A DNA stretch of 64,000 nucleotides, from contig JBHGNT010000003.1 of the NCBI GenBank assembly GCA_043228905.1, positions 23,250,001 through 23,314,000 of the forward strand, read 5' to 3'. The position numbers and the translations under genes are program-made. The notes below the pieces were generated by a model. It did no database searches. It saw only the letters and a program-made list of their open reading frames with translations, and had not been told where the DNA came from. This stretch comes from Azolla caroliniana. Lineage: Eukaryota > Plantae > Polypodiophyta. The stretch's first letter is position 1, and every line of letters begins with the position of its first letter. Shown piece after piece: positions 26,941-51,240 of this stretch.

Positions 26941-27535
26941 TAAACACCTTTAGTAAGATCTTGCTTTTTATAACCAAGTGTATATGTAAATGTACTAATT
27001 GCTTGTTCAAGAGTTGCATACGGATTTGTGTGTACTAAATCCCATCCACCACTCATAGAGTTTTGGTGTCAAGCCCCACGAGTACGACGTTCTTGATTAA
27101 ATTGAGGTCGCACCACCCTTCCTAAATAATTGAGTTGTAACTAATTAGATCATCTCTGATTTTGCACTTGTTTCTGCCAAGGATTTTTCTTAAAGCCTTA
27201 ATTCATTCTCAAATTATCTTTTGGTAATGCCTTAACATTAGTAACTTTTGTGTCCCTTTGCATGGCAACACCCTTCCCTTTTATCTTATGCTTCACTTGA
27301 TGCTACTCTTGATCTTCAACATTTGGTTCTACATTAGTACGTTGTTGTGAAGTTGAGGCTTCATGATATTGAAACCAAGGCAGGAATTTGACAAGTGTCA
27401 TGCCTGTCAAAGGCCATTTTGCCCGTCAAAAACACACACCCAATAAAAATGTCCGTCAAGTGACACATAAACTTGTTGGGATTTCGGTCCCTCCGGATGG
27501 GATGTCCGGAGATGAATGACGGCAAGCCCGGTTGC

Positions 27536-27790
27536 GGTTACGGAACCGGATGATGAAGAGTACCCGGCATGAAGCCGGATAAAGAGTACCCGGATACGGA
27601 GCCGGATGATGAAGACCCCGGTTACGGAGCCGGATGATGAAGACCCCGGTTACGGAGCCGGATGCTGAAGACCCCGGTTACGGAGCCGGATGATGAAGAC
27701 CCCGGTTACGGAGCCGGATGATGAAGACCCCGGTTACGGAGCCGGATGCTGAAGACCCCGGTTACGGAGCCGGATGACGAATGTACCCGG
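27536..27790. repeat. 28-bp minisatellite in Copia U3 (~9 copies)
   Basis: GCCGGATGATGAAGACCCCGGTTACGGA repeated. Confidence 0.9.
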
Positions 27791-28277
27791 AGAGAGATCC
27801 GGATGCGGGGACATATTTGTGAATATGTTTGCCAAGAGCCCTTGAGGCTATATTTGTAAATAGCCCAAAAGTCATATGTGTATAAATATGACTTAGGGCA
27901 AACAGTTTTATGTTGTTGTTGCTCATTTTCTGTTTTCCACGAAGAGGGAGCGAAGTGAGAGCAGCCGAGAGAGTGTGAGAGACGAAGAGGTCGTTGCCTC
28001 AGTGTATTACCGCCGCCTGTGGCGAAGACTGTGAGCTCAAGGTTGTTGCCTTGTAGCTTCATCATTGTACATCTCTGCATATAGTGATAGTTGGAGTTTG
28101 AGGACTCCCGTGGTTTTTCCCACTTAGGGTTTTCCACGTAAAATATCCTGTGTACTCTTCTCCCCATTATCTTCGTGTATTTTGTAATTCCTGTTTTCTG
28201 AAAGTTAATCCTATTTCTCGGTTGTGGCCGAGCACTGCGTATAACAAATTGGTATCAGAGCGACGGTAACACAGAAA

Positions 28278-29840
28278 ATGGAAGGCGGCGGTAGTGGGCC
28301 TCCTGGCATGATGGTGTTGAACTCACAGAACTACGCCGACTGGAAGATAAAGATGGAAGACCTTCTCATCGTCCGAGACCTATACGAACCGATCGACAAT
28401 GCCGAGATACCCAAGGGGGTAATAGAGTCGGAGTGGAAGCTCCTGAACCGGAAAGCCGTAGCGACGATCCGGCAATATGTCGATGTAAGTGTCCTGCAAC
28501 ATGTGGCGAACGATACGAACGCCTATGAGATGTGGAAGAAGCTGTCGGGCCTCTATGAGAGGAAGAATGCGTTGAACCGGACCTCCCTGATGAGGAAGAT
28601 AGTGAACCTCAAGTACCGGGACGGCGAGAGTATGGTGGAACACGTAAGCACGTTCATGGGATTCGTGAACCAGCTTGCGGCGATCAAGTTCCCGTTGGAG
28701 GATGCAATGCAAGCCATCATCCTGATGTGTACATTGCCGGACAGCTGGGAGAACTTGGTGGTGACTCTCAGCACCTCCTGCACCGAAGATAACTTGTCCC
28801 TACAAACGGTAAAGACAAGTATTTTGAACGAAGAAGCGCGTCGGAGAGATAAAGAACCGGTTTCTGATCAGAAGATGCTGCTTACCGAATCGGATCGGGG
28901 AAGACAATGGAACCGGAGTCCGCAAAGACGGGAGAAGTCGGGGACCCGGTCGCAGTCAAGAGGAAGGCCAACATGCTTCCACTGTGGGAAGCCGGGGCAC
29001 TTCCGGAAGAATTGTCGGCACTACCGAAAGGACAACGGAGCCGACGACACCGATTCGAAGAAGTCACCGGAGAGAAACGGTGCATACCGGGGAGCCACGG
29101 ACCGGAGAGGTCCGGATCGGCGAGGGCAGGACCGGAAAGGAACGACGGCACTTGCGGCAAGTGAAGAAGAGATAATGCTTATTACCGAAGAGAAGGAGCT
29201 GAACCTTGCCGGTGTAGAGATGACCTGGGTGGTCGATTCCGGAGCGTCGTTCCACCTGACCCCGGAGAAGAAATACTTCTCATCCTACACAGCCGGTGAG
29301 CACGGCTGTGTCCGGATGGGAAATGAAGGCACATGCCGGATTGCCGGCATAGGAGACGTGTGGCTGTTGACATCAACCGGATGCAAGATGCTGTTGAAGG
29401 ATGTGCGACACGTTCCGGAGGTCCGATTGAACCTGATCTCGGCCGGGAGGCTAGATGATGAAGGCTACACGGGTAGCATCCGGAACGGTGTCATGAAGTT
29501 CAGCAAGGGGAGCCTGATAGTGGCTCGGGCCCGGAAGGTCAACACCCTGTACCTGATGAATTCCCGGCTATGTCCGAGGAGCTGAACGTGGCAGCCGACA
29601 CTGCCGGTGAGCTGTGGCACAAGAGACTGTGCCACATGAGTGAGAAGGGATGAAGAGGCTTGCAGAAGACAACCTCATTCCAGTGAAGCATGTGCATCTG
29701 GAGAAGTGCACCGATTGCCTGGCCGGTAAGCAGAACCGAACCTCCTTCCACTCAAGGCCACCGACGAGACGTAGCGCACCATTGGAGTTGGTGCACACTG
29801 ATGTGTGTCAGGTAGAAACGAAGTCACATGGCGGAGCCAG
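28278..29840 (+). CDS. Copia gag-pol polyprotein (gag, zinc knuckle, protease, start of integrase), two 1-nt frameshifts, truncated
   Basis: LNSQNYADWKIKMEDLL, TLPDSWE, CFHCGKPGHFRKNC, WVVDSGASFH, VRHVPEVRLNLIS, LWHKRLCH, CTDCLAGKQ, PLELVHTDVC. Confidence 0.88.
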
Positions 29841-29887
29841 TGTTACACGCAGTGCTCGGCCACAACCGAGAAATAGGATTAACTTTC
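29841..29887 (-). mobile_element. Inverted 3' end of a same-family LTR joined into the integrase
   Basis: Reverse complement of 28200-28246 with one mismatch; runs into the gap. Confidence 0.85.
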
Positions 29888-30711: not shown

Positions 30712-31398
30712 AGTACTGAATATGGGAAACATCAAACTCATCATTGTGTGAGTATGGCTAGCTTGGAAAATAACGACGAATATCATATAGATAATGGGCA
30801 CAAAACAATTGATATCCAGAATGTGAATACTGAAGTTATTGGAAACGATGATTGGATGGGTCTTGGAATCTCGTCTAAATATAGTAATAGAAAAGATTGT
30901 TGCCAATCATGAAGAAATCCTAAGGATACATGATAAGTTGGATGAAGTACGCAATGCGCTTAAATGTACGAGGGACGATGTTGCCTCTTTGTCAGAGGCT
31001 CTAAAAGAGAGACTAGAGAGAGCCCTTCCATATGTTAATGATTTGGTTTGGATATTGACTACAGCTGCTAAGCTCGGCATTAACTCTGTGATTCCCATTG
31101 TAGATGTTTTCGATACCAAATCATTCGCTCACCCAATTGAAAATTGCCAAAAGAGCACACTATTCTGACAACATCATCAAGCATCACCTCTCATGTCCAA
31201 CCAACAATATTGCAATCTTCTGAACAATGGCAAAAATGATTGGGATCGATATTGAGGGACAAGTACGAGGGTGCCACAAACAAAATCATATACGATAAGT
31301 TCCTTCTCAGGCGTGCCACCTACAAGGAAACAGACGGTAATATTCGAGTCGCATGGCTATGTGACAAAGACTATGAGGACGCACACCATTCCCGCTAG
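30712..31398 (+). pseudogene. C-terminal fragment of a third TRN1-like Roco paralog
   Basis: EKIVANHEEILRIHDKLDE, ALPYVN...LTTAAKLGIN, then in another frame SSEQWQK*LGSIL...KFLLRRATY...VAWLCDKDY, matching the C-termini of the two intact genes. Internal deletion, frameshift and stop. Confidence 0.88.
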
Positions 31399-31654
31399 AT
31401 TGAATTTTGTCCTGCCCACAGAGATTTCAGAAAAAAAGTGTCTAATATTTGCTCAAATGTTTTAATTGCTAATTTCTATGTAATTCTTGACTAAACACAC
31501 ATGCATGCATGCTTATGTATGTATATAAACAATAATAAAGAGATCACTATTTTTGTACTTTAAATGGCGGAAGGTTTTTCTTCCTAATTTACTGATGCCT
31601 CTTGTTAAGCCTTTGTTGTCTATCATGCATTCTTTGGTGTCATGTATTGAGCAA

Positions 31655-31778
31655 TGTGTCATGCACATATTTTGTTTATTTTAGGATCTATATATGTTAT
31701 ATTCATAGAATTAGTGTGTCATGCGCATATTTTGTTTATTTTAGGATCTGTATATGTTATATTCATAGAATTTGTGTG
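31655..31778. repeat. 60-bp tandem duplication
   Basis: TGTGTCATGC.CATATTTTGTTTATTTTAGGATCT.TATATGTTATATTCATAGAATT x2. Confidence 0.9.
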
Positions 31779-32609
31779 ATGTACAATGAAGGTGGGGTTT
31801 TGCATTAGGTCATTGGTTTTTATATCATCTCCTTAATGTTTTTGTTAAGCTTGTGCTAATTCTATAGAAATTAGCATAAGTTAGAAACTTAAAATAAGCT
31901 TAGCTGAATTCTTCCATAACATCATACCAAATGCATGAGATAAAGACACACATTAACCACGTAGACCAAAGGTTTTTTAAAATATGATATCTTTATTTAG
32001 TATTCAAATCAATCAAATAATAGTATGGTGTACTTGGAAGAAAATCAAATAATAATTTTCTTCTAAGCTCACTATTGTTTTAATATATATTTTCAAGTGG
32101 TTGATCATCACATTGTTGCGATGACGCATGTGCATGTGTTACTCAAGCGGGACCCTTGGGAACCTGAACTAAGGAGGCTATGATGTTGTCGGAGAGGACT
32201 TTTAAACCCCTTCGTGGGTTGTCTCCAGTAATTTTTCCCTCTTTTGTTTTGTGTAATAGCATTGTAACGATCAAAGATTTAATTCAACTTGGGGTAAGAC
32301 TCAAACCGAAGATAGCTTAGGCTTGAGTCAAGGAAAGTTGTTTGTTATTATATTATTGTTTTCGTATGTTTATACATATTTTTTTGGTTGTCTCCTCTTT
32401 CCCTTTTTCTCAATATTCTACCTTTATACCCGCCACATCACAACAATGCTAACAAGCAGATCATCCTTGACACCAAGATATCATCATCCTATTGGTCAAG
32501 AAATTACCACACACACCTTTACATTCAGCAATAATGATTGGATTCTAGTCCAAGTAATTAGATATTAACAAGAATATATGTTTACTTGCATAAGATATTT
32601 CAAAGCACC

Positions 32610-32712
32610 ACAATATTCTCCTCACATTGTACGTTGATGATCTCGTGTTGACAAGCAACACTAACGTCTATATAGATATGATCAAGTAGAGGCTAATGTT
32701 CTTGTTCAAGAT
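32610..32712 (+). pseudogene. Tiny Copia RT remnant
   Basis: Translates as ILLTLYVDDLVLTSN...MIK*RL. Confidence 0.55.
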
Positions 32713-33735
32713 TTATATTGTCCAAGGGGTGTGTGTGTGTGTGTAGCATTAGCTTTTAAATGATAAATCCAGGATATTTGTATTCTTAGATAATTGTGTT
32801 AGAATCTATAATTCCTTTTTTCAAAATTAATATTGCCAAAGGGCACAAGTTGTACTTTTATGCCATGTAGCAAATGAATCTACTTCAATGAGGCAAATTT
32901 TACTTTATCCAGGTATATATATATATATATATATATTGGTTGTGCATGGCTATAATCTAGCAAAGCTGGATGCCAATAGCATTGATACCCTTGTTTATTT
33001 CACTTTGCCGGCACACACAAGCGCAACACGCCCAAAGTTGAGGCCTACAAATTCTATTATTCAACGAGGAAGAAGATGATACTGAACCAAGATGTGGAAT
33101 TCAATGAATGTCAAGAATCTAGATATTGAGGATGGGAGATCAGATCTGAGACATCAAAAGGAAGATACAACATGAATCTTGATGGTTCCTAGTTGTTTCC
33201 TAAAGTAAGAAATCACATGTAGCCATTCCTAATTCATATCTATTGTTAAAATCAGTGTGATACATATCCATTCTTAACAAACTCAATGACGATGTCTATT
33301 TTACTTAATTTGGAGAGAGTTTCTATACAATAAGTAAGGGTGTGATTTAAGTAACATAAATGCAAAGACGTAGTAGAAACAAACTATGCAATCTATGATC
33401 ATCCCATGTTGTTAGGTAAACAATGAATGCTTCACACAAATGCATGTATGCTAGGATGATATCTATGTGATGTGATCCAAAAATACCATGTCTAATGACC
33501 ATGACACTAAAGGATACATTGGCTTTTTGTTTGGAAAACAAAAGATGAATTCTGTAAGTTATACATGATAGAAGGATAACAAGTCTGCACTACCATTTTA
33601 GAGTAATGAATGTGTAGGAGGTTTGGAATACAACTGTAGAGCAGGCATTTGGAACCAATGCAAGAAATTTTGAGGTCTATAGGAACTCCGAATCCGAGGG
33701 AACGAAACAACGATTATTAGCGAAGAGGATGTAAT

Positions 33736-36700
33736 TTAGCCAAGTAGCGGGAAAGGGATCTGTCTTTCGTAGTGCTCGTGGCACAGCCATGTGACTCGAT
33801 TGCTACCGTCCGATGTGTACATGGCACGCCGAAGGAGGAACTTCTTGGCTATGTTGTCGTCGGTCATGCCCCCATGTTGTGCCAACACGGACACCAAGCA
33901 CTCTTGCCAGTGTCCGAAAGACCGCAACCATGGACACACACGAGACGTGGCGGACAACTCTTCTTTCCCGATGCCGGCATTGAGGCCGGGAAGCCAGCCA
34001 AGCATGGTCGAGGTCGTTGGAGGAGCTAGAATGTTGATGCCTACTGTAGCTGCTATGGTGAAAGTGCGAAGGAGACGATTCGCATACAGAATGGCTCTGT
34101 GTAGAGCCTCTGAGAAAGAGGTGAGTGTGATCCCCAATTGCTCTTCTATTAGGTGCGGCGATCCCCTGTCCTCGCAGCAGAGCTTGATTTGCACAGACAG
34201 CAAATGATGGTCTCCCATCAGTGAAGTCACTACCTTCATTGTGTCGCTCGCCCCTTTGGTCGTGAGGAAGACCAAACGAGGGAGCTGCTTGTCAGATCCA
34301 TTCTCCATAGCACAATTCAATAGCTTGTCTGCAGCTTCCATAACCTTGCTCACGACATCGCTTCGCATACAATCGATTTCTTTATGCAGTTCATCGATCC
34401 TCTTCTTCATTTCACCCACCTTATCATGTAACCTTATGATCTCTTGATGACTGGCAATAACTTTTTCTTTGATTGAATTTAGAGTGGATTCTATGTCCAT
34501 GAACACCGACCTTGACATCCCCACGCGAAACGGTACCTCCTGATCTCCCTTTTCAGATATTTGATCTTCTTGCAGACTAGTTGGGTTATTTTGAAAGCCA
34601 CTTCTTGTCCTATCTTGGTGCAGAGTTTCATGTTGCTGGAATACATGGGCCTCATCATTTTCCATTAATTCGTCAGCCACCTCTTTCAACCACGATTTAA
34701 AAGACATGAGAACCTCTAAGTAATTCTTGTAGCCGAGGAGATCAATCCAAGAAGTTGTTGTACAAACATTCATATACTTAGAAGAGTTTTTCCAATTATG
34801 ACATGGTGGGCGGCCTTCCTCAAGTTGATTTCGTAGTTGTTGCTTCAAATGAGTTATTTCCATGCATTGATCTTCTCTGTTTTGTGCCATTGAAGGGTCA
34901 TGTAAGGAGTCAGGTTGAATGACACTTTCAATCAACTTGACTCCTTGGATGCCTTTGGGTTGGTCGTAGACCTTGATAACAGTTTCAATGATATGATCTT
35001 CTACATAATCTATCATCCTTGCCATGTCTTCTTGATTGTTGGTCTCAGCTCGAACCAACACATCTATCACATTGTCTGCTTTTGCTTGAGAAAACACCAC
35101 TATGATCTCCATGGTTGGCATTGGTACACAAATGGATATGAAATCTTTGCCAAGCTTTATATCAGCATTGACCACTTGGAATGCTTCGTTCAATAACACT
35201 TGAATCCTTAGGAACAAACTTGGTGTGAGAAAGTTGAGATCTCTGTTTTCACAGGCAAGCCTTCGGCCAATAAATGAAGAAGTATTATCATGTGAACTGC
35301 CGGAGGAGGTTGTCCATTGGAGTTGTTCCATTCCTAGATCTAACTCTTTGGGATCTGACAATATGTGTGGGACAAAGAGGCAATCTCCATTCCTTGTTGC
35401 GTTGTCAAGGTTATTGGGAACCTTAAAACACAAATTCATTGCCTCCATCAAATCCACCAATATAGACCCTTTTACTTGAGATTTAGTAAGGGATTCCAGC
35501 TCTGCCTCCAAGAAACCTCGACTTGTATAAAATCTGTGGTTTGCCTTGGTCCTAGATGCTCTACGCTCTGGGAAATGAATTAGCCTTCTCATGATCTGAG
35601 TACAGAACCAATTGGGATCAAGAACAATGTGTGCTGTAATGTTGTCATATAGGATAATCCCAGACTCAATCAAAGATGAAGCGATCGCTTTCAATTTAGC
35701 TTCATCATCTGGAACGGAAAGTTGAACCCTGCAGATTTCGCTAAATTGTGACCATGTAATGATTCGTTGGTTGGATGTCTTCAAATGATTCGACAAATGG
35801 CTCCTTACTTGTGTGCAGATTTTGTACACCTCAATACCTTCAAGCATTTGCTTTGCAATGCCAAAGACATATTCTGCTAGAGTTTTGACAGACTCCTTTC
35901 TTGCAGCATCCACTGAGAAACTTGGGTCAACTATGTGAATGATCTCTTTAAACTCGGATCGAAGCGAATTAATCGTCAAGGAGAGATCACTTGAGCAGAG
36001 ATCCATTCGATCTGCACACATGAATACCACGATCACTTTCGGAGCAATGCTAAGTTGGCGGCTTTTGGAGGCAAGAAACTTGAGCCAATACCTGAATCCT
36101 ATTTCAAATTCCTCCTCCTGTTTTTTCTGCGTTCCATCTCTTCTATCTTTCCTGTGTGTAATGGAACTCCACACAAACATGAGCATAGGTGGAGCTTGAT
36201 GGGAGCTATATTGCCCTAAGTTTGGGAACATAAAATCTTGGAATGCATGGAATTCTGGTCGACCTGCCATTTCCCACACAGACAATCCAAGTCCTTCTTT
36301 CTCGATGGCTTGGAATTGGATTCCTTGTGTGCGATCCCCTGCGATTCTTCCAACTTTGGGAAGCCTAAATGTTCTCACTGTATGTTTCTTGCCTGCATAG
36401 ATGGAATGCATGGTGGATAGAAGGCTAGTCTTATTCGCTCCTGCACGAACAAACTACATATTATGCGCTTAAACACAGAGAAACGCAAAACAGTATTAGG
36501 TAAAAGTCAGTAGTTTGCCTGCATCTGGATGATCTCTGCAGATGAACAGCCGCATGGATGTGGCCGAAACTTTCTCAAGATCACCTCCCAACATGAATAG
36601 GCGTTGATTCCTCGCGATCTGAGCTTCAATGGTGGGATCCATGTTCTCTAAGCCCTTCAGCTCCAGGAATGGAATGCCTGAGCGAGAAAGTGCATCCATA

Positions 36701-37707
36701 ACCGCAGCCACAATAGCTCGATTGGAGTCAAGATCAGTGGCATTACAGAACAGGCGGCCTAACGTGAACCTGTATAATCGAGCAGGAGACTGCGCGAGTT
36801 CTTCCATGCAATCCAACAGATACTCGTTTTTCATGACACAGCCGTCTACTAAAGTAAGCTCTTTGAGCTGGGGCCAGTGGTGCAGGAAGCCACGGAAGCT
36901 CCTCCGCTTGGGGCCATGGCTCATGAGGATTCCGTGGAGATCCAGCCTCTGGAGAGAGGCTGCAAGGGATGAATGTGAGGGATGCAGGTCTGCCAATTTC
37001 TCGACGAACTCTGGCGATACAACATCACCCAGGAGGTGAAGGCTAGTGAGGGAGCAGAGCTCGCTTAGCTTGGTTATGCATTCATCTCCATGCATCCTGC
37101 AGACCTGCAGGGAGAGATCCTGCAGGCCATGGCATGACTTGAGGACAGTCAGCAGATCAGAGACATTCAAGGCATTGCACTCTCTGATGATCAAACTGCT
37201 CGGGGCAGCATCACGATCTGCAGCTTGAGACAGAGCCTCCAGCCAATCCGAGGCTTCGCGTGGAGACAGATTATTTAGGTACAGGAGATGAACCGCTCCT
37301 CCGCCGAAATTGGCGGCATCCCGGAGGTACTCCATCCTCCGGTCGGCCGCCAATTCTGGCGGCATCACGGGGTCTCCAAGATCAATCATGATGTCTTTGG
37401 TGCCCCACTCGAGCAGGCCGACACTCGACAGGTAATTGATGGTGCCGGCGACTCGGCTGCTATCGATGAGGAAAAGCTTCCTAACATCGGTTACACGAAT
37501 CAGATGAGAGAGGCCCCGATGATCGCGATCGTGTTCGGCCCCGGCCCCGCGGATGAACCCGAGCACCTCGAAACGATCGAGGGATGCCCTCGATTTCGCG
37601 AGGGCATCTCGGATAAATTCGGAATCCCAGATCCTCTTCACGTAGGCATGGGGTGGTGGGAGCTTCTCATGGTGATGGACCATGGTGGGAGCAGCCTCCT
37701 TATCCAT
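33736..37707 (-). CDS. TRN1-like: TORNADO1-like LRR-Roc-COR protein, copy 1 (degenerate GTPase motifs); exons 37707-36519 and 36440-33736, ~1297 aa
   Basis: LxxLxL repeats (LQDLSL, LTSLHL, LQRLDL, LKELTL); Roc WEMAGRPEFHAFQDFMFP and RYWLKFLAS; COR IVLDPNWFC and GRRLAC; TRN1-type tail LCCE..H and FLLRRA..WLCHEH. A 78-nt GC-AG intron joins the two ORFs in frame. Confidence 0.85.
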
Positions 37708-37889
37708 GGTATCAACAGAGATGGTGATTGTATAAGGGAAGCTATAGCACCAAGGGACACTACAATTGAAGTGAAAGACTTGCAATGTGGAAGTCTACTC
37801 CAATTGAAAGTGTATTTCTATCATTGAAAGAATGAACCATGCTAATTAAACCCTTCCCTTCCATTACATGTTCATCAAGTACTTTTTTC

Positions 37890-38650
37890 GAAAGTGTGGA
37901 TTCCACGAGGACGAGACACGTAGATGGACGAGGTCTTGTCTCACTAGACCCCATCTTTGGGTGTGTGGATGTTGGAAGTATTGTTGTGGGTTCAATAACA
38001 AGACACAATGGACCAAATCTTGTCTCGCTAGATATAATCTTCGAATGTGTGGATGGTGGAAGTTATATTGTTGTGGATTCGTAACTATCTAAGCACAAGA
38101 AAGACTTTGAACAAGTATGTGTGGTCTAGTAGAATATCTTGTGTCGATGGTGGAAATATGATTGGCCTATATCTTCGTAATGTCCATGACACGAGAAGAT
38201 AATAATCTTATAAGCCAAGTTGAGAAAGAATGACTCCATATCCTCGAATGTGGATGGTGGAAGTATCATTGACATTCGTGACACGAGAAGACAATCAACT
38301 AAAGTCTTGTCTCACTAGACCCCATCAAATGTGTGGATAGTGGAAGTATTATTGGTGTATCTTCATAACCATTGTGACACGAGAAGACAATGGTCTAAGT
38401 CTTGTCACGCACGCTCAAATGTGTGGATGGTGCAAGTATTATTGATGTATCTTTATGACCAATGCGACATGAGAAGACAATGGACTAAGTCTAGTCTACC
38501 TGGATTGTGTTGAATGTGTGGGTTGTGGACATTCTATTGAAATATCTTTATAACTATGTGAAATACAACAAGACAGTGGACTAAGTCTAGAGTATCATTG
38601 AATATGTGGATGCCTAGACTCCATGGAATGTGTAGATGGTGGAAATAATA
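37890..38650. repeat. Degenerate ~85-110-bp tandem repeat (~8 units) upstream of Roco copy 1
   Basis: Recurrent AATGTGTGGATGGTGGAAGTA and GAGAAGACAATGGACTAAGTCTTGTC. Confidence 0.75.
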
Positions 38651-39480
38651 ATACTATTCAAGCAATCTCTAGTAATATTAAATTATTGAACATACAATCT
38701 TGCCACATACTCTTCTTTCATTATCCATGCGCTTTAGATGTTTATGAATTAATCTTTGAGTTTGGGCAACTTGCATCATCTTTTCCTATCTATATTGTTA
38801 CAAAGTCATCACAATTGACGTGCCTCAAGAGATAATCGACATGACAGATCACATGACCTAACCTTAAAATTAGCTAGACAATGTCACAAAACACAATTTT
38901 TTATGGTATTAAAATACATAATAGAAATGGAACTAGCATGTTAAAGGATCTACATCATCATGCAACACAATACTTCTATATGTATTTGCACATATCTTAA
39001 TTCATATATCACCTTTTCAAAGTCACTACACTTAAAAAATTGCTGAAAACATGAGAACACATTTTTAAAAAAATGAGAATTACAATGACCAGATGACATT
39101 CTCATAGACTTGAGGTTGTTCAATTAGAAAACGGTTCCACAAATTAATGGCTCGTGATGTATCCATTTTGAAGGATGGATGAGGGGATATTGGCACAACA
39201 TTGCTTTTTCTTTTTCGTACCTCTTCTTTACAAATATATTCATGGCATGGCATTTCGGTTTTCCAAGATATAATGATGGCATGCGACTTATACTTATGGG
39301 CCATTTAATCAAATGATGATAGCCTTAGTCCTTGCACCTTCAAAAGAAGAATATCGAATAAGAATATGAATATCCATGTTCTTTGGTTTCATGTAAGCTA
39401 TTGAGTAATACCACGAGGACAATGGTTTTCTAGGTTTCCTCTAATAACAAGAAGTTATATACATACATATGTTATATATG

Positions 39481-39751
39481 TATGTATAGCTTGCAAGGTT
39501 TCTTTGGTCATAATGGTGAACTTGTGAATAACACCATTTGATTTAGGTTTTGTAAAACCATAAGAAGATATTATTCTTCTCCTTTTTGGAGAAAGTTGTG
39601 ACTCCTGACTGTATGCATAGCTTGCAAGGTTTCTTTGGTCATAATGGTGAACTTGTGAATAACACCATTTGCTTTAGGTTTTGTAAAACCATAAGAAGAT
39701 ATTATTCTTCTCCTTTTTGGAGAAAGTTGTGACTCTTGACTATATGCATAG
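39481..39751. repeat. 131-bp tandem duplication
   Basis: TATG.ATAGCTTGCAAGGTTTC at 39481 and 39612, near-identical units. Confidence 0.92.
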
Positions 39752-40922
39752 TCTCATCTTTCTTGAATGTTGTGATAAAAAAATGAGCAAGGCATTTCTA
39801 GATTAGGAAGCAAAAAACTCCATTTACTTTAAAATCAAGAAACGTCGGTCACTATTTATTATATTAGAGAATTGTTTATTGTTATGAACTCTGAGCATTT
39901 ATTACCAATGAAGGAATACTCAAAAAGCTTACAATAGCTTCATTGTTTAAAGCCATTGAGGAAGTAGTTTTAGAGAGCGAGTTGTGGACAAAACCGCATT
40001 AGTAGGGGATATACTTTAGCTTAGTGAGAAATGCAATTGTCAATATTTATAGTGTTCTTCACATAAACATGTAATTTAATCATCTTTTAGGTTAATTTTC
40101 ATAATAGTATTGATCACTTGCATCTACTAGAGGCCATTTCTAATTAAGCAATCAAAACCTACAACTAATTCTCCCAATTGGTTCATGGCCAATTAATATA
40201 TATGCTATTGTGTTATATGAGAAAAAAATTTAGGGATTGAATCATTTTAGTAACAAAATTTCATTTGGATGACTTTTACCAAGGAGATTTGGAATGGTTT
40301 AATTTACGAGAATATTTTGATTAGTTGATCCAAACACTATGATAGAGGTGGGAATAGTACCTTGAACCCTATTGTACTATGTCTAATGTTTGGTTATTTT
40401 TATTGTTTCTCCATCCCTAGAGCCATATATAGGTTATAAATGTTCCAATATCTAGGCCTTTCTTTGTGTTTGGCTTTTCTGATTGGGGGGAGTGGGGGAC
40501 CACTACATTAGTTTTGAATAAGGTATATCCTATGATTGGTCGTATTAGAGCAGAAATTTCTACATTCCCATAGTGTAATTGATTGAAGGTATAAATAATC
40601 CTAGAGTCTACATAATATGCTAATAATATAGAGGCATGAGACAACTTACAAGTCTTTAAATGTATTTCATGAATGTAAAGAGTGTTTAACTTTTAAATGA
40701 AGCTCTCTTAGATGATTATTTGTACCAACAAATTTTCTACCTACTTGCATCAACATTGAGCCAAGTAGAAAATATATGTGTCATATTTAAAAATGCATCG
40801 GGGTTGTATGTTCACTTAAGAAAACCAAAGAAATTTACAGCAAATTTCAACACAAACCTTTCAAGCTAACAAGAAATCATTGTCTTTGTAGCATATACAG
40901 TGCATATGTTAATTTTATGATC

Positions 40923-43900
40923 TTAGCCTAGGGAGTAAGGCATTTGTTCTTTGTAGTGCATGTCACATAGCCACGCAACGTAATCACTCCCATCTCCTTT
41001 TTTGCAAATGGCGCGCTGGAGTCGGAACTTCTCGAGTATGTTTTGGTCGGTCAAGCCTCCGTTGTCCGTCAATATGGACGCCAAGCACTTCTGCCACTCT
41101 CGGAAAGACTCCTCGGACATGTTAGGACACACATGAGAGATGATGCTTGGTGTACCCATGGACGCATCATTTTCTGGTCTAACAGTCTTAGATATCATGG
41201 GGTACTCCTTGACCCCTGGGATGTTGGGAAGCCAATTGGGCAGGACAGCTAAACAGTTAACGCTGAGCTTGGCAGCTAAAGACAGGATAAAGACAATGTG
41301 ATTAATGTATGGGAGGGCTTTGTGTAGAGCCTTGGACAGGGGTTTGGAGAGGGAGGTGAGAGTGATCCCGGCTTGTTTCTCCACCGGGTGTGGCGACCCC
41401 TCGTACTCGCAATAGAGCTCGAGCCGAATAGCTGAGGCATGGTCGCCGAACAGCGAGGTCACCAACTTCCTTATCGTATTCACACCTTCGGTCGTAAGGA
41501 CGACGAGACGAGGGAGTTGCTTATCGGCCTCGTTGTCCACCGCAAACTTGAGCAGCTTGTCCATGGATTTCACAACCTTCCTCATGACATCTTCCCTCAT
41601 ACATTTCACCTCTTCATGTAGATCATCCAACTTGGTGCCAATGGCATCCACTTTATCATGTAGCCTCAAGACCACTCCATGAGTCACATCCACTTTATCA
41701 TCTATCCTCAAGGCCACTCCATGACTCACATCCACCTTATCATGTAGCCTATAGACCTCCCTCAAGATCTCCCTTACCATTCCCCTGCCACATTGTAATT
41801 CCACTCCCTCTTCTTGTATTTCTTCCTTGTCCAGATCAATGTTGTCAAGCATTTTCTTCTTCGGATCTTGATTACTACTAGTCACATCTTGATGACCTCG
41901 ATTCTGAACGTATTCGTCATTTTGCAATAGTGCATCCGTCTTTTCACTCACCTCTTTCAACCATGATTTACAAGAGCTGATGACTTGTGAGTAATTAGTG
42001 GGACCGATAAGGTTAATGAAAGAAGTTGTCCTAAGCATAGCCATAGACTTAGTTTCCTTCCAAACATAACATGGTGGGTGTCCTTGCTCAAGTTGCTGCC
42101 TTAGTGTTTGCTTTAAATAGTTCATCTCCACACATTGATCTCTATTTCGTGTCATCGATGGGTCATGCAAAGAGTCGGGCCGGATCACACTCTCAACCAA
42201 CTTAACCCCTTGGATACCAGCTGGTTGTGCACAAACCGTAACCAAAGTGTAGATGATAAGCTCTTCCACGTAAGATACGGCCCGTGCCATGTCTTCTTGA
42301 CTATTGTTTGGAGCCCGGACCAACACATCTATCACATGATCTGATTTTGTTCGACAAAAAGCCACAATGATCTCCATCATTTCCACACAAATGGATATGG
42401 AATCTTTGCGGAGAATCACGTCAGCATTGACATGATCTTGCTGGAATACAATGTTGAATAACACTTGGATTCTTGGAAACAGACCTGGTGTAAGAAAGTT
42501 GAGGTCTTTATTCTCGCACTCTAACCTTCTACCCATATATACATAAGTATTATCGTCCGAATTTTGTGGGGTTGAGGTGGAGGATCTCCACTGGAGTTGT
42601 TCCACACCCACATATAATTTTCTGGGATCCGTCAGTGTAGCTGGGATAAAGAGATGATCTGCATCACTTGTTGAGACACCAAGATCATTGGGGACTTTGC
42701 AACATAGGTGCATTGCTTCCATCAAATCCACCAATAGAGACCCCTTCACTTCAGATTTGGTAAGCAGCTCCAACTTGGCTTGTAGGAAGGCACGAGTGGT
42801 GAATCCATGAATCTCGATCGTCTCGCATGCTTTAGACTCCGTGAAATGGATCAAGCTTCCCATGATTTGATTGCAAAACCAATTGGGATCAAGAACAATG
42901 TATCCAATGTTGTTTACATATATGATGATTCCGGAATCGTTCAAAGACAAGGCGATTGCTTTTAATTTAGCATCATCATTGGGAATAGGAAGATGCTTGC
43001 AGATTTCAGTGAACTCGGACCATGTAATGATTCGTCGCTTGGATGCCTTTAAATACTTTGACAGATGCTCGCTCACCTCTTTGCAGATGCCATACACTTG
43101 GACACCTAACAGCATCTCTTTTGAAGTCTTGAAGATCATTTCTGAGACAGCTTTGACAGACTCCTTCTTTCTGGCATCCACTTCAAAAGGAGGGTAGGCT
43201 ATGTCAATGATGCCTTTAAACATAGATCGAAGCGAATTAATTGAAGCTGATACAGCACTTCCAACAATATTCATTTGATCGAGCCGCGTTAATACCACGA
43301 CGACTTTGATAGCAACGTTAGATTGGGGGCTTTTGGAAGCGAGAAACTTGAGCCAGTACCTGAAGCTTGATTCGAATTCCTCGATTTCTTTCTTTTTACC
43401 CTTTCTGCTGTTCTGGCTGTGCATGGGACTCCAAACAAACATGAACATAGATGGAGCTTGATAAGAGCTTGTTCCGATGTCGGGGAACATGCAGTCATGG
43501 AATGCATGGAATTCTTGATGGCCCGCCATGTCCCACAGAGACAATCGGATTCCGTCTTTCCTGATGGCTCGGACTTCGATTCCTCGTGTGCGATCCGGCG
43601 AGGTATGTCCGCAGGCAATGAGGGTTCGCATCTTAGCTCTCTTGCCTGCGTAAATGGAATGCATGGTGGATAGAAGGGTAGTCTTTCCTGCAAGAATAGA
43701 CAAGTTACAATACAAGATTGATTTAGCTTGATAAGCAGGCATGCATCCATCCATGGATTTACTGTGTCAGAGGTAAATTAGGGAAAGGAGGTGAAAGGAA
43801 AAGCAAAATAAAGGTTTCATGGGAAGGGAGTGATTAATTTGCCTGCCTGCAAATGGATCCCCGCATATGAAAAGGCGCATGGAAGTAGCCGGCACTTTCT

Positions 43901-45017
43901 GAAGGTCTCCCAAGATGAACAGGCGTTGGTTCCTTTTGAGCTGGGCTTCAATGGCAGGATCAATGGTACCTAAGCCTCGTAGCTGCAGGAATGGGAGCCC
44001 AGACAGAGAAAGCGCATCCACGATGGCACGGGTAGTTCGTGGGGACTCCAGGCCTGTCGTATAGCGTAAGGTTCCTAAGGTGAGGCTCTCTAATGGAGCA
44101 GGAGATGAAGAAAGTGGGGTTTTGCTTGTCGTCTGCTTCTTCTTGGACTGTTGTTCTAGGTCTTCCATGCAGCAGATTAGGTCATCTTCTTTGAAGTTGT
44201 AGAAGTCTATGAGAGTAAGATCTTTGAGGTGGGGCCAATGGTGCAGGAAACCGGCGAGGCTCGTGCTGAGGGATGGAGATTCGCCATGGGGGATTATCTC
44301 CATGTGCAGGCTCTGCAGAGAGGCTGCGAGGGGAGAATGCGAGGGATGAAGATCTGACAGTTTCCTCAGGAACTGGCTGGAGACCACCACATCCTGAAGG
44401 TGGAGGCTAGTGAGGGATCTGAGGCAGCTCAAGAGCTGAATGCATTCATCGCTGACATTTCTGAAGTACTGCAGGGAGAGATGCTGCAGGCCCTTGCTTC
44501 TCTGGAGGGCACTGAGGAGGCCATGGACATGGAAGCTGCAATGAGTGATGAGCAAGCTCATGGGGGCCGCGGAGCCGCGCTCCGCCGCCACAGACAGTGC
44601 CTCCAGCCATGCCTGACTGTCGGCTTCCGAGAGATTCAGGAGATAGACTGCTCCCCCGATGAAATTCGCAGCATCCCAGAGGTGCTCCGCCCTTCTTCTT
44701 CGGCTCGATTCATCCTTTTCTTGGGCACCCAGATCGATCATGAGGTCTCGGCTCCCCCACTCGCGCCGCCCCCCGTCATTATTATTGCCCGACCAATAAC
44801 ATATGGACTCGATCCCTCTGCTGCTGTCGATGAGGAAGACATTCTTCGTATCGGTGGCTTTGATCGCATCAGAGAGCTCATGCCCGCCATGGCTAGATCC
44901 TTTCAAGGTGGTTCTGGATCTCTCGCATGCTTCCTTGACATAATTTGAGTCCCATTCCATGAGGATGTAGGGGTGAGGCGCTTGAAGCGGCTTCCGCTGC
45001 CTCGCAACCTCGTCCAT
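40923..45017 (-). CDS. TRN1-like: TORNADO1-like LRR-Roc-COR protein, copy 2 (intact GTPase motifs); exons 45017-43847 and 43687-40923, ~1311 aa
   Basis: LRR units (LQHLSL, LTSLHL, LKDLTL, LESLTL); spliced P-loop LFICGDPFAG|KTT, RTRGIEV, WDMAGHQEFHAFHDCMFP, LTRLD; COR VLDPNWFC, FIPATL, MGRRLEC, FLTPGLFPRIQV; tail LYCE..H and WLCDMH. 159-nt GC-AG intron. Confidence 0.9.
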
Positions 45018-45100
45018 ACCTCTAAAAACCAGAAGGAGATCCCAAGGATGCAATCCGAGTCACCAGCTTATCGGATCCTCATCCTCCCCCAATTCCACAC

Positions 45101-45430
45101 AATGGCTTAGTAGTAATTCAGCACTGAGCCTAATGGCTTACTAGTGATTAATCACTGAGCCTAATGGTTTACTAGTAATTAATCACTGAGCTAATGGCTT
45201 ACTAGTAATTAGTCACTGAGCTAATGGCTTGCTAGTAATTAATCGCGGAGCTAATGGCTTGCTAGTAATTAATCACGGAGCTAATGGCTTGCTAGTAATT
45301 ATTCACTGAGCTAATGGCTTGCAAGTAATTAATCACGAAGCTAATGGCTTGCTAGTAATTAATCACGGAGCTAATGGCTTATAATAATTAATCACCGAGC
45401 TAATGGCTTACTAGTAATTAATCACTGAGC
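45101..45430. repeat. 30-bp minisatellite (11 copies) starting 84 bp upstream of the Roco copy 2 ATG
   Basis: Consensus AATGGCTTRCTAGTAATTAATCACKGAGCT. Confidence 0.93.
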
Positions 45431-48400
45431 CATTCTAATTTAGCCCCGCGAGCTTGGTTCTAACGATGTCGTAATTAAGAGCAATCTAACCTTGAAGAAC
45501 TAATGATCCCCTGAGTCGGATTTAGTGAGCATCATTTAAGAGTAACGTGCACAATTACAATAATAGCTGCAATCATTGACTTCAAATGGGAGTGAGGATT
45601 AAATAAAGATTCAAGAAGATGTTTTGTTGAACACATGGGCAGCACACGAAAAAAGGGTAGTCATAGATGGTCACTCTTGAGGCATTGTGCTCTAGTGTCT
45701 CACTTTCGAAGGGCCTACTCTTTTACCACAATAAAAGCGAGGAATTCTTCGCAGACTAACTAACGTACGGTTCGCAATGCATGTAATGCCTCGTTTACAT
45801 CTCCTTCCACAAATAATTTGGATTGGGCCTCCCCGAAGTTGGATGATAATGATCACTTGCCTTACTCATCCAATGAAATTTGACATGATATGATATTATA
45901 TGACGCTCTTAATGTTGTCACCGAGCCACATTCCAAGGCCGAAGCATTTCTAAAGTGTGAAAACAAAGAAAAGAAGAAGAAGAGAGACAAGATATGGATA
46001 GTACCATCAATAGTTTTCAAAGAGACATAAATTGAATGGATCGAGTAAAGCAGCCCCCGTGAAAAAATAAATGTGAAATAGATTGCCAACCATACAGTGT
46101 CAACACATAGAATGTCAAAGAATGTCATACATACATATTGTGCATTTCAAAGGTACACCACAATATATATATATATATATGCAAAACTTTATTAGTTGGT
46201 GTAATCAAAGTTTGGGCTTACATGTTTAAGAAAAGGCTCTTGGATTACTTAGATCTCACTTTATGGGAGAAAAATCAACGAAAACAGAAAAGAATTTGGA
46301 GCAGGGGCAGAATTTTGCCTCTTCCCCCCAATGCCACGTTGATTAAATGAACAGGAAGTGGGGGGGGGGGGCTTGCACTAGATCCAAAAGTCGCGTTAAT
46401 TTAGCCAGAATTGCTTCGAACATTTTGCCATCAGTTGCGTAAACGAATAATCCAGAATCTAGATTATTATTAAATGAACAGTAAAACTTGGTCGAGACGT
46501 CTAAAGAATCAATGGTTGTTATCTCTTATGAATCATCTTTGTTTATTTTAATCATCTATAATTTGTGGAAACTTTCAGGTTTTATATTTGTATTCTGTAT
46601 TCGGGACCCCCCCAGGCCATATACCCGTCCAATATATATATATATAGTTCATGTGTACATGTGATTTGATATGAGAGCGATGTGCACATGTTAATCTGTA
46701 AACCTTCGATATCATGTATCTTCAATGTGCTATCCAAAGCAAAAGTGGTTAAATTGGAGCTTTTCAACATGCAATTTGTTTCTTGTTGAGTTCATCAATT
46801 CCCTTTAAATCCTGTATCACCTTGTCTTTAAATATGCTCTTTAAAACACTCTCCTTTAAATTAACCAGAGCAATTAAAATTACGGCACTAGTACAAAATG
46901 CTCGAGATTAATGATAACATTTTGGGCTAATGTTTCTATAATCCATTCTTGGTTTTGGAGTTGGATTTACTGTTTTAAGTCTATGATTGGGGTCTATTAA
47001 TCCATTTTCTACTTCGGTCATCAATCCTACCATTGATCTATTTGCCACTTTTGTATTAATGGGTATCTTTCAATCCTAGATTGATCTATTTACCATGTTT
47101 CGTTTGGGTACCTTTCGATCCTGGGAGTGATCTAGTTACCACTTTTCTAGTGGGTGTCTTTGAATACCACCATGGAAGATTGTAGCGAATTCCACACTCT
47201 ACTCTATTAGTTCTAAACAGCGAACGATATTCTTCTATACTTTGTCAGCTTTCGTTCTTGTTAAACAAATTCGATCACTACTCTGAATTTTATTGGATCT
47301 TGCATTCTTAACACCATTTTTCTTTGATTGGACATTCTCTTGGTTCAGAACCTCGATGTTCCATCCAAGCATGAGTGAAGAAAACTTCATGTGAACAGAA
47401 GAAAACTTCATGTGGAATGTTCAGTAGATTCTTGGCTTCTAGCTATGGACCATATATTATATTTCCAAAATATGTTTGTCCATGGAAGTTCTCATTTAAT
47501 TAATAAGAAATAAATACATACTTCTACCTTACTAGGTCTTTAACAGATGAGTTTTGTTGTCATTACAATGATTTCATTCCTAACTTCTGAGGTCAATGAG
47601 TCCTGCCCCCCAACATGGATAATTAAACTTTAAACGAGATTGGTTTTCACAAACAAAGAAAACCATAAACAAATTTGATTAATGATTATGCTCAATTAAT
47701 TGTTGTCTTGGGTCAATGCCATAGAATTGTCGTTATCAAGAAGATTAGCCTCTTTTATAAAGTAAAATGCTTCAAAGTCTAATGGCAGATAAATCCTTAC
47801 GATAGGTGTTTTCATGTTGAGCTGGATCAACTCCATTCTGGTATCCAACTTGTCAAACTATTGGATCAGCAAAATGATATATTATGAGATTGTCAAGCCT
47901 CAACTACATATACACAAACAATAAATGTCTAGATATGGTGCGTATAGATATAAATATTGGATTGATATAAAACATAATGTCCTGATGGACTAGATGGACA
48001 ATTGATCTATGTCAATGTTGTGCACAATCTGAGGTTAAAATTATGAAGCGTTCTTAACAATGAGTGCAACTTGCAAGATTTACTATGACATGATCACATC
48101 TACATTTTGAGAATTCGGAAGCTCAAACTTAAAATGCAAATTATTTAAGGAGACATCTAAAAACCTTTTACCAATGATGTACATAAGCCACAATGTTTTC
48201 ATATTGCATCTTAGTATGTTATCTCTTTTCATATTAATTTGCTCCAAAAAATTATGTTTATATAGATAAGGATAATGTGCACTCACAATGAAAATATCAT
48301 GAATAATGGCTGTGTACATATGGATCAGCACCACATTCTCGACATCTAGTCTTGGAAGAAGATACAATATTGCAGCATTTGTTCTATTTTCTTCTCTTGG

Positions 48401-48864: not shown

Positions 48865-51240
48865 TCACCCTAAAAGAAGCATCCCAGTTGCTTCCACACT
48901 CCCATCTTCACTATCATACCTCTCTTCCCATGCTTTCTTTTCCACTCCCATGGCTTTGATCTTGTCAGCATCCTCTCGCCTCCCAGCGGCCGTGTATATG
49001 TTTCGCATAAGAACATAAGCAGCCGCATCATTTTCATCCAATTGTATAGAATGATCAAAGGCTAGTTTCCCGAGTTTCACATTCGTCCATTTGTGACAAG
49101 CTCCTAACACAGTTAGCCACGTTGTATGATTCTCTGAATATGGCATTTCATCAACCAGTGTCTGAACCTTCTCAAAATGACCAGCACGTCCGAAAAGGTC
49201 AATCACACATGTATGATGCTCTACCGTTGGCATTATTCCAAAACATGTACTCATACTAGCAAAATACATTTGACCCTTTTCTAGTAAGCCAGAATGGCTA
49301 CAAGTTGTAAGCAAGATTGTACATGTGATTAGATCGGGTACTATTCCTTGTCTTATCATTTCATTGAATGTGGCAAACGCCAATTCATCTTTCCCAACTT
49401 GGGCATATCCAGCAATAAGAGAATTCCATGAGACAAGTGCTCGGAAGGGTAACTCATCAAACACAACTTGAGCTTTTGCTATTGCACCACATTTTGCGTA
49501 CATGTCAATTAAAGCATTTCTGATCAAACTGTGTCTTTCTAACCATCCATCTTTAATAATATCATTATGTATACTTTCTCCCTTCTCAATGGCTCCTAAC
49601 ATGCCACATGCTTTCAAGATGCAAAGAAATGTAACAGCATCCGGGCCAAAACCATTAGATTTCATATCCTCAAGACAAGTTAGGGCTTCCTCTCCATTTC
49701 CATGTTGTGTATACCCAGCAATGAGAGCATTCCAAGACACCACATCTCGGATTTGAATCTCATTGAAGACTTCTTGTGCTTTTCTAAGTGCTCCACATTT
49801 TGCATACATATCTACCAATGCATTTCCAATCAAAATATCCTTTTTTAGCCATCCTGTCTTAACGATCTCGGCATGTAATTTTTGGCCCTTTTCAGTTGCT
49901 CCTATGCTCCCACAAGCCTTTAGAATGCATGAAAATATAAATCCATCTGCCAGAAAACCATGATCTTGCATTCTTCGATAATAGTTTAATGCTTCCTCAC
50001 CATACCCATACTCAGAATACCCAGCAATAAGTGATGTCCAAGATATTATATCCCGAGTAGGAATCTCATTAAAAACTTCCTCAGCCTTTCTTATATCTCC
50101 ACATTTCACATACATGTCAATTAAGGCATTACCAACCCAGGTTTCCTTCTTCAATAAACCCTCTTTTAAGATTTTGTCATGAATAAATTGGCCTGTCTTG
50201 AGACAACAAATGGTGCCACAAGCTTTCAAAATGCAAACAAAAGTGACAGAATCAGGAGAAAAACCTTCACATATCATCCATTCTAAATAGCTCAATGCTT
50301 TCACACCCTTCCCATATTGCGTGTATCCTGAAATGAGAGCATTCCATGAGACTATATCCCGAGCAGGAAGCTCATCAAAAAGATCTTGTGCTTCCTCAAG
50401 CAAACCACATTTTGCATACATATCCAAAAGTGCATTCCCAATAAGAAAATGCTTCTTCAAATCTTCAACTTTTATAATCACTGAATGTATTTGCTGGCCC
50501 TTCTTAGCTTCCCCTATGCTTCCACAAGCTTTCAAGATACATATTAGAGTGATTGAATTCGGATGAAGCCCTTCCTGTTGCATTCGTGTGAAACATTCAA
50601 TACCTTTTTGGCCATGTCCATATTGAGTATATCCACCAATAAGAGAAGTCCAAGAGACTACATCTCGAACCCTAAGCTCATCAAACACATCTACCGCCCT
50701 TTCCAGAGCACCACATTTTGAATACATATCAACCAATGCATTGCTGACAAAAATATCTTTTCCTGAAAAGCCACGCTCAACTATATCTGAATGTATTTCA
50801 CTTCCTTTTTTAGCCGATCTTATGCTCCCATATACTTTCAAGATGCAAACGAATGTGTACCCGTCGGGGGGTGGACCATGGCAACACATCTTCTCATATA
50901 GTTTTAGTGCTTCTTTGTTATAGCCATATTGGGCATATCCACCAATAAGTGTTGTCCAACATCTGACATCTCTAACCCTAAGAATATCGAATACTTCCTG
51001 TGCTTTCGTAAGTTCACCACATTTAGCATACATATGCATCAAAGTGCTTCCGATACATGCTTCTTTCTCTAGTAACCCTCTCTTAACAATCTCTTCATGT
51101 AATTTCTCACCATTGTATAGATCTTTCCTCTTAGCACAACCTCTCAATGAGGACATAAGTAAAGAAACGTCCTCTACATTCTTCTTGTGCTTTTCCTTTG
51201 AACCAATAAGATTTGCATTAGCCATAGCTTCACAAACCAT
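48865..51240 (-). CDS. PLS-class pentatricopeptide repeat protein with E domain, no DYW
   Basis: Six GNAL(V/I)DMYAKCG-type motifs alternating with VVSWNALIAGY and VTFVCILKACG; terminal HHTCVIDLFGRAG, WLTVLGAC, AAAYVLMRNIY. First in-frame ATG is 51240; the true start is uncertain. Confidence 0.92.
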   Translation of the reverse strand: MVCEAMANANLIGSKEKHKKNVEDVSLLMSSLRGCAKRKDLYNGEKLHEEIVKRGLLEKEACIGSTLMHMYAKCGELTKAQEVFDILRVRDVRCWTTLIGGYAQYGYNKEALKLYEKMCCHGPPPDGYTFVCILKVYGSIRSAKKGSEIHSDIVERGFSGKDIFVSNALVDMYSKCGALERAVDVFDELRVRDVVSWTSLIGGYTQYGHGQKGIECFTRMQQEGLHPNSITLICILKACGSIGEAKKGQQIHSVIIKVEDLKKHFLIGNALLDMYAKCGLLEEAQDLFDELPARDIVSWNALISGYTQYGKGVKALSYLEWMICEGFSPDSVTFVCILKACGTICCLKTGQFIHDKILKEGLLKKETWVGNALIDMYVKCGDIRKAEEVFNEIPTRDIISWTSLIAGYSEYGYGEEALNYYRRMQDHGFLADGFIFSCILKACGSIGATEKGQKLHAEIVKTGWLKKDILIGNALVDMYAKCGALRKAQEVFNEIQIRDVVSWNALIAGYTQHGNGEEALTCLEDMKSNGFGPDAVTFLCILKACGMLGAIEKGESIHNDIIKDGWLERHSLIRNALIDMYAKCGAIAKAQVVFDELPFRALVSWNSLIAGYAQVGKDELAFATFNEMIRQGIVPDLITCTILLTTCSHSGLLEKGQMYFASMSTCFGIMPTVEHHTCVIDLFGRAGHFEKVQTLVDEMPYSENHTTWLTVLGACHKWTNVKLGKLAFDHSIQLDENDAAAYVLMRNIYTAAGRREDADKIKAMGVEKKAWEERYDSEDGSVEATGMLLLG

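Follow-up and report, generated by a model that had tools for sequence, protein, structure and literature searches.

A stretch of 64,000 nucleotides from the fern Azolla caroliniana (assembly GCA_043228905.1, contig JBHGNT010000003.1, positions 23,250,001 to 23,314,000 of the forward strand; hereafter the window, in whose own numbering all positions are given) raises the question of what a cluster of genes encoding leucine-rich repeats (LRRs), a Roc GTPase domain and a COR domain might do in a plant. The original prediction, made from the letters of the window, took this cluster for a locally expanded and divergent set of relatives of TORNADO1 (TRN1) and for a candidate immune receptor system. 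Our analysis suggests that the window probably holds two anciently duplicated, transcribed members of a fern-specific, multi-copy TORNADO1-type Roco branch, together with the dead tail of a third copy, and that their role is likely that of an intracellular signalling scaffold.

Four long minus-strand open reading frames (ORFs) between 33.7 and 45.0 kb pair into two complete LRR-Roc-COR genes, here called A and B, which lie head to tail with a spacer of 3.2 kb between them (Table 1). The two full-length head-to-tail genes of the original prediction are indeed present. Each has one phase-1 GC-AG intron, and in both genes it falls within the codon for the second glycine of the Walker A motif (P-loop). 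The intron of gene B is a predicted one, placed from the reading frame, the P-loop motif and the homology to A and to full-length relatives.

Table 1 Features of the locus and its surroundings, in window coordinates
Feature	Position	Strand	Description
Gene A	33736-37707	minus	Two exons, 1297 codons, ORF-based
Gene A exon 1	36519-37707	minus	ORF, ATG at 37707; N-terminal RI-type LRR domain
Gene A intron	36441-36518	minus	78 nt, GC-AG, phase 1; from sequence and run contigs
Gene A exon 2	33736-36440	minus	ORF including stop; degenerate Roc, COR-A, COR-B region, coiled coil, conserved C-terminal domain
Gene B	40923-45017	minus	Two exons, 1311 codons, ORF-based
Gene B exon 1	43847-45017	minus	ORF, ATG at 45017; RI-type LRR domain
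Gene B intron	43688-43846	minus	159 nt, GC-AG, phase 1; predicted, position and phase as in A
Gene B exon 2	40923-43687	minus	ORF including stop; canonical Roc, COR-A, COR-B region, coiled coil, conserved C-terminal domain
Tandem 42-nt (14-codon) units (family D10)	41645-41770	minus	Three units, in the coiled-coil region of B
Third-copy relic	30863-31380	plus	0.5 kb, located by tblastn, convergent with gene A
Copia-type gag / Pol beta-barrel fragment	28200-29887	plus	Pfam Retrotran_gag_2 1.8e-34, Pol_BBD 3.5e-24
30-nt minisatellite (family D1)	45131-45469		~11 units, starts 114 nt upstream of the B start codon
PPR-E gene	48865-51270	minus	Intact, 801 residues, E motif, PPR_2 5e-100

Both predicted proteins have the same order of modules, namely a ribonuclease-inhibitor (RI)-type LRR, Roc, COR-A, a COR-B region, a coiled coil and a C-terminal domain of ~240 residues. 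All searches, folds and trees reported here were run on single exons, never on exons 1 and 2 joined. In Pfam scans, COR-A stood above its cut-off of 35.3 bits in both genes (A 40.9, B 41.8). Just upstream of COR-A, B had a weak Roc match, which at 20.1 bits fell short of the cut-off. The Roc-COR region of both genes aligns to the Roc-COR-A-COR-B span (residues 503-1029) of an Ipomoea TORNADO1 protein (P0038). Pfam detected no LRR in exon 1 alone of either A or B; a profile of exon-1 homologs matched the LRRs of ribonuclease inhibitor and NLRP proteins at E-values (E) of 1e-17 to 1e-22. The AlphaFold2 (AF2) model of B exon 1 (predicted local distance difference test, pLDDT, 86; predicted template modelling score, pTM, 0.86) is a regular alternating strand-helix solenoid, and the top Foldseek matches of this model were the LRRs of NLRP14, NOD2, NLRC4 and SKP2 (E 2.5e-5 to 1e-3) and of NLRP3. 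No kinase or other catalytic Pfam family was found in A or B, and B exon 2, searched by sequence against solved structures, returned no match.

Between COR and the coiled coil lies a poorly conserved linker. The conservation of the C-terminal domain extends to TRN1, mosses and liverworts: in a 34-sequence alignment, P66, C100, E101, G114, F228, L230, W246 and C248 are invariant, and the domain carries the motifs LPR..., CE...PH and VAWLC; blastp aligned it to residues 1119-1366 of P0038 at E 1e-6. The domain is of the alpha/beta type, and its AF2 model is confident (pLDDT 82). The model gave no Foldseek match in the PDB at E ≤ 0.001, and the best VIA-align hit (Z 4.3) involved long helices only, leaving no convincing solved relative. 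Its nearest neighbour in the ESM Atlas belongs to a cyanobacterial Roco cluster (TM score 0.49 over 174 residues), which we regard as a lead and not as a finding. The TORNADO1-like nature of the genes is thus borne out, as A and B are full-length homologs of TRN1, at ~29% identity, with the C-terminal domain in common.

The two genes differ in the state of their GTPase motifs. Gene B carries canonical G motifs, which read GDPFAGKTT (spanning the splice junction), DMAG and TRLD. The P-loop of gene A reads RDHPDAGANKTS: it lacks the first glycine and has gained one residue ahead of the GK position and two within it. The gene's other motifs are EMAG, with E for D in DxxG, and MCAD at G4. All 17 full-length relatives with an identifiable P-loop have CGxxxxGK[TN] there, and A is the only exception. 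Because its P-loop is lost, the product of gene A is most likely deficient in nucleotide binding, and the gene may be either a pseudo-GTPase maintained in a regulatory role or a copy at the very start of its decay. Gene B, because it has kept all G motifs, most likely encodes an active switch.

Evidence for transcription came from four small sequencing runs of a related organism, which were aligned to positions 36300-42299 at a threshold of 90% identity. The run contigs, 92-97% identical to the window, cover exon 1 and the start of exon 2 of A (36300-37441) as well as the 3' untranslated region (UTR) and exon 2 of B (40755-42299), and none falls in the A-B spacer (37500-40700). Exon 1 of A is covered at 36518-37441 by contigs of X1, X3 and X5, and contigs of X1 and X3 skip exactly the 78 nt of the A intron, with 140 and 42 letters, respectively, on the shorter side of the joint. 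This exon-only coverage and the intron-less joint indicate that orthologs or very close paralogs of A and B are transcribed in the relative and that A is spliced as modelled. Loose contig ends at the junction resemble other paralogs with canonical P-loops, indicating that several members of the family are expressed. The relative's transcripts list no indel at the P-loop of A, with at most 1 to 3 mismatches per 140-145 nt, and therefore the lesion of A appears to be common to the relative.

We placed the genes within their family by searching for relatives and building trees. Among 5.8 billion proteins the nearest were proteins from metagenome contigs (50-57% identity), and the next nearest were fern proteins of Adiantum nelumboides, Adiantum capillus-veneris and Ceratopteris. 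An exhaustive HMMER scan of 1.84 billion representatives retrieved 341 relatives. Named members of the family include TORNADO1 of Ipomoea (P0038, E 2.4e-57) and Acorus, many genes of Ceratodon and Sphagnum, and genes of Marchantia, Riccia and Chara braunii. A search for a closer homolog of the A type found none. Trees of the Roc-COR region, rooted on Chara, comprised quick posterior mean site frequency (PMSF) trees and a 28-taxon LG+F+G4 tree with approximately unbiased (AU) tests. A and B fell in a fern-only clade with Adiantum and Ceratopteris (fern I), supported at 99-100 in the PMSF trees and at 99.9/100 (Shimodaira-Hasegawa-like approximate likelihood ratio test, SH-aLRT/ultrafast bootstrap, UFBoot) in the 28-taxon tree, within a subclade of six rows nested among Adiantum paralogs. 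A second fern lineage (fern II), represented by the Pteridium proteins P0049 and P0048, joined seed-plant TRN1 (84/70), and the best matches of P0048 after P0049 were likewise seed-plant TRN1 proteins. The group of mosses, fern II and seed-plant TRN1 excluded fern I (SH-aLRT 92 in the quick tree, 85/67 in the 28-taxon tree).

The AU tests sharpened this picture in part. Constraining the window's clade and seed-plant TRN1 to an exclusive group was rejected (p = 0.014), monophyly of fern I and fern II was not rejected (p = 0.28), and neither was a group of fern I, fern II and seed plants (p = 0.19); two of the AU constraint trees came from -fast searches, and their likelihoods may be slightly low. 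In the best trees fern II, and not the window's clade, is nearest to seed-plant TRN1, which speaks against strict orthology of A and B to TORNADO1. The trees thus support a placement of the window's clade apart from the nearest TRN1-type lineage, and ferns carry at least two deep TRN1-type Roco lineages. For the proposal that the cluster is lineage-specific and distinct from the true TRN1 ortholog speak the fern-only clade and the rejected sisterhood; monophyly of the two fern lineages, which was not rejected, would make both of them co-orthologs of TRN1.

Next to family membership, the age of the A/B duplication and the selection acting on it bear on what the genes do. In a codon alignment, exon 1 of A and B shows 54% amino-acid identity over 369 aligned residues with 48 gap columns, a number of synonymous substitutions per synonymous site (dS) of 0.92 and a ratio of non-synonymous to synonymous rates (dN/dS) of 0.42; exon 2 shows 55% identity, dS 0.89 and dN/dS 0.36 (by tblastn, the identity of A and B is 46-51%). 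The many substitutions and indels noted earlier between the LRR exons are therefore real, but exon 1 and exon 2 are similarly diverged, and the LRR is not singled out. Because dS is ~0.9, the duplication is old and not recent, so that a local, divergent tandem expansion is present but its recency had been overstated. The selection tests, which are pairwise and crude, gave sliding-window dN/dS values of 0.1 to 0.7 between A and B, and one 39-codon window reached 1.32, which is at noise level. When five close paralogs were mapped on the LRR model, the exposed positions of the concave strands had a mean pairwise identity of 0.47, compared to 0.43 for exposed helix and 0.41 for exposed loop positions (p = 0.48 and 0.29). 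This pattern is opposite to what is expected under diversifying selection focused on the LRR. The check on exposed LRR positions put forward with the original prediction thus found no hypervariable concave face and no region with dN/dS clearly above 1. We conclude that purifying selection on the A/B pair is moderately relaxed and that nothing points to diversification focused on the LRR.

Related loci give a view of how copies come and go. On an ENA contig (L007; ERZ27227283 k141_178830), two different paralogs lie head to tail ~94 nt apart, with exon-1 ends ~80% identical. On the same contig, positions 343-4311 form one predicted ORF of 1328 residues in which a Roc-COR-C-terminal exon runs into the next LRR exon with no stop, and this long ORF may reflect read-through or fusion of the tandem pair, or else an error of annotation. 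A stray COR fragment lies downstream of the gene at L001. In the sister subclade, the locus tags of two Adiantum genes are adjacent (GOP47_0005224/5), and moss matches often carry neighbouring tags (KC19_12G144500 to 12G149400, CY35_03G015000 to 015600). Many TRN1-like Roco proteins were retrieved from each of the Sphagnum and Ceratodon genomes, the expansion being larger in mosses than in ferns. At four of the four Adiantum loci inspected (L003-L006), no second copy was found within 10 kb, and therefore clustering is frequent but not the rule. Birth-and-death turnover, as originally proposed, is plausible in the light of the tandem pairs, the relic described below, the decay of the A P-loop, the fragment at L001 and the adjacent Adiantum tags, although the duplication itself is old.

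Two further comparisons concern the exchange of sequence and the P-loop intron. Positions 50-2470 of another ENA contig (L002; ERZ1034393 NODE_526) are A-like over the first ~120 codons of exon 2 (dS 0.06-0.14) and, past that point, equally far from A and B (dS ~0.85); its intron end and P-loop half, which are canonical, resemble B, and the A-like part still reads KTTL. We did not count this mosaic as gene conversion, since a chimeric assembly is possible in a metagenome of 2x coverage. In Adiantum nelumboides (L005, ~11067-11071), the LRR and Roc parts of the gene for P0008 appear contiguous at the P-loop, with no intron evident. The window genes, L001, L004 and L006 have a gap at this position, and the P-loop intron may be variably present within the fern clade.

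The third copy proved to be smaller than the pseudogenised paralog that had been predicted. Dead it is, but when the translations of the four exons were compared with the window by tblastn, the only further Roco piece was a 0.5-kb relic on the opposite strand, which matches the C-termini of A and B at 34-49% identity in two frames; a search of 1-30 kb for additional pieces returned none at E<0.5. Three-frame translation showed that the relic is N-truncated and keeps no more of the C-terminal domain than its last ~200 codons; ~80 internal codons are missing, the frame shifts near 31100-31170 and a stop codon lies in frame. The adjoining pile of transposons is as described, with Ty3 (chromodomain) and copia debris at 1-12 kb and 28-30 kb, and the relic abuts the copia gag fragment.

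The most likely role of the window genes is that of a diversified TRN1-like intracellular signalling scaffold, in preference to that of a demonstrated pathogen sensor. In such a scaffold, Roc-COR would act as a nucleotide-dependent conformational or dimerisation switch, as extrapolated from bacterial Roco proteins and LRRK2, the LRR would be the partner-binding input and the C-terminal module would provide an output or an anchor, the third copy having presumably been truncated beside retrotransposon insertions. Several points weigh against this account. The function is argued by analogy with the family; for a conserved developmental scaffold, dN/dS values of ~0.4 are high, and they would fit partial relaxation or episodic adaptation; Pfam COR-B was found in neither gene, including in rescanned C-terminal stretches of exon 2, and the region is named for its alignment to the COR-B region of TRN1. 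That the sequencing runs are RNA, moreover, is a guess, argued from coverage confined to exons and from the joint that lacks the intron. Their transcripts belong to a relative (92-97% identity) and not to the genome of the window, and the intron of gene B lies outside the stretch that the run contigs cover. A different account, which we consider rather improbable, would make the window's clade the fern co-orthologs of TRN1, duplicated within ferns or euphyllophytes, with developmental roles of the auxin or patterning type split among the copies. The full-length architecture is the same as that of TRN1, C-terminal domain included, purifying selection predominates, the AU tests reject neither of the groupings that contain fern I and fern II, and the word-limited protein search retrieved no fern II member from Adiantum or Ceratopteris. 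The best trees, however, put the window's clade outside the mosses, fern II and seed-plant TRN1, with fern II the nearer to TRN1, and the AU test rejects fern I as the exclusive sister of TRN1; long branches, pseudogenisation and the loss of a P-loop would also be unusual for an essential single-function developmental gene.

A further alternative, possible if somewhat doubtful, is that only B is functional and that A, although transcribed, is in early decay, leaving one working gene and two dying copies. A alone among the relatives inspected has a disrupted P-loop, it also departs from the canonical state at DxxG and G4, and dN/dS is 0.40 for A against L001 compared to 0.26 for B; the intact KTTL in the A-like part of L002, at so small a dS, suggests that the lesion may be recent. 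Yet the reading frame of A is unbroken over all its codons, its terminal branch (0.24-0.27) is hardly longer than that of B (0.20-0.22), and in the relative's transcripts its intron is properly excised and its P-loop region is almost free of mismatches and lists no indel. That the genes are lineage-specific, intracellular, non-NLR immune sensors, in which the LRR would recognise non-self, Roc-COR would switch and copies would turn over by birth and death, strikes us as unlikely and speculative. Copy number, clustering and pseudogenes lend it circumstantial support: the family has multiple copies in ferns and is strongly expanded in mosses, adjacent locus tags are common, tandem pairs occur in the window and at L007, dead fragments occur in the window and at L001, and the L002 mosaic could reflect exchange between paralogs. 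A dN/dS of ~0.4 is above what is usual for housekeeping genes, the modelled LRR is closest in structure to those of animal NLRs, and LRR-ROCO families of brown algae have been proposed as immune receptors (PMC11378527). The selection pattern lends it none, however, given the old duplication, the even divergence across domains, a concave face as conserved as helix and loop, and the want of any region with dN/dS clearly above 1; in addition, a single exon encodes the whole LRR, whereas brown algae shuffle exons that each encode one repeat, and the copy numbers seen per fern genome are small (~2-4 representatives). A yet broader conjecture, very improbable in our judgement, would have non-seed streptophytes (Chara, liverworts, mosses and ferns) keep expanded, often tandem TRN1-type families as a second, GTPase-based class of intracellular sensors, reduced in seed plants to a single developmental TRN1, with the P-loop-dead A as regulatory or sensor subunit and the intact B as active switch in a COR-mediated heterodimer. 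A predicted complex of the COR regions of A and B scored 0.03, which speaks neither for nor against binding.

Compared with known systems, the TRN1-type scaffold that we favour has its closest counterpart in TORNADO1/TRN1 (LOPPED1) of Arabidopsis and its seed-plant orthologs (P0038 of Ipomoea, P0186 of Nelumbo, P0188 of Magnolia and P0182 of Taxus), which are kinase-free, have the same order of modules as A and B and are homologous to them over the whole length, the P-loop context CGxxxxGKT being common to TRN1 and B. The differences are the low identity, the separate fern-only clade with another fern lineage nearer TRN1, the low copy number in seed plants versus multiple, tandem copies here, the absence of detectable Pfam COR-B and LRR_6 from A and B, and the dead P-loop of A. 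Bacterial Roco (Chlorobium tepidum) and human LRRK2 share the LRR-Roc-COR core, and the T-[RH]-x-D type of G4 motif known from LRRK2 is matched here; A and B differ in having neither kinase nor WD40 and no sequence match to a solved chain. Dimerisation and GTP-driven monomerisation of A and B would be predicted by analogy. The brown-algal LRR-ROCOs likewise combine an LRR with Roc-COR in lineage-specific, expanded families with pseudogenes. Their diversity arises by the shuffling of single-LRR exons and by alternative splicing (PMC11378527), whereas the LRR of the window genes is one exon whose concave face is not hypervariable; here the two are set apart by description and not by sequence comparison. 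Animal NLRs (NOD2, NLRC4, NLRP3/14) have the RI-type LRR closest in structure to the window model and a similar logic of LRR plus NTPase switch. They use a STAND NACHT or NB-ARC ATPase in place of the Ras-like Roc GTPase and COR, and the window LRR is N-terminal, so that the likeness is confined to the repeat fold.

Overall, these results amount to a comparative-genomic description, according to which ferns, mosses and liverworts have several copies of TRN1-type Roco genes, often in tandem, and the family reaches back to Chara. In the literature searched, plant ROCOs are given as one or two (developmental) genes per genome, and the fern immune-receptor surveys found there make no mention of ROCOs; the breadth of the family in non-seed plants thus seems to be undescribed in that literature. 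The locus offers an entry point to the role that the C-terminal domain of TRN1 and the Roc-COR switch play in plants, and to a possible sensing role of the expanded copies. Its two GTPases, one live and one P-loop-dead, make a test case for pseudo-GTPase regulation in Roco proteins.

Several minor features surround the two genes. Gene A has one copy (34413-34454) of the 42-nt D10 unit that is repeated in the coiled-coil region of B. The D1 minisatellite falls where the promoter or 5' UTR of B is presumed to be, has no counterpart upstream of gene A, and explains the upper end of the interval that the original prediction assigned to the cluster. On the other side of the genes, the ORF of the copia gag / Pol beta-barrel fragment (28278-29585) is bracketed by 47-nt inverted repeats (I1) that are 98% complementary (28200-28246 and 29841-29887), and 42-nt direct repeats at 28106 and 30567 lie outside these, an arrangement unusual for a fragment of a long terminal repeat element. 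Just upstream, a 28-nt GC-rich tandem repeat of ~10 units occupies 27533-27812. An Rfam scan gave no match in the window. The next gene past the upstream end of B is the PPR-E gene, which likely encodes an organellar RNA-editing factor.

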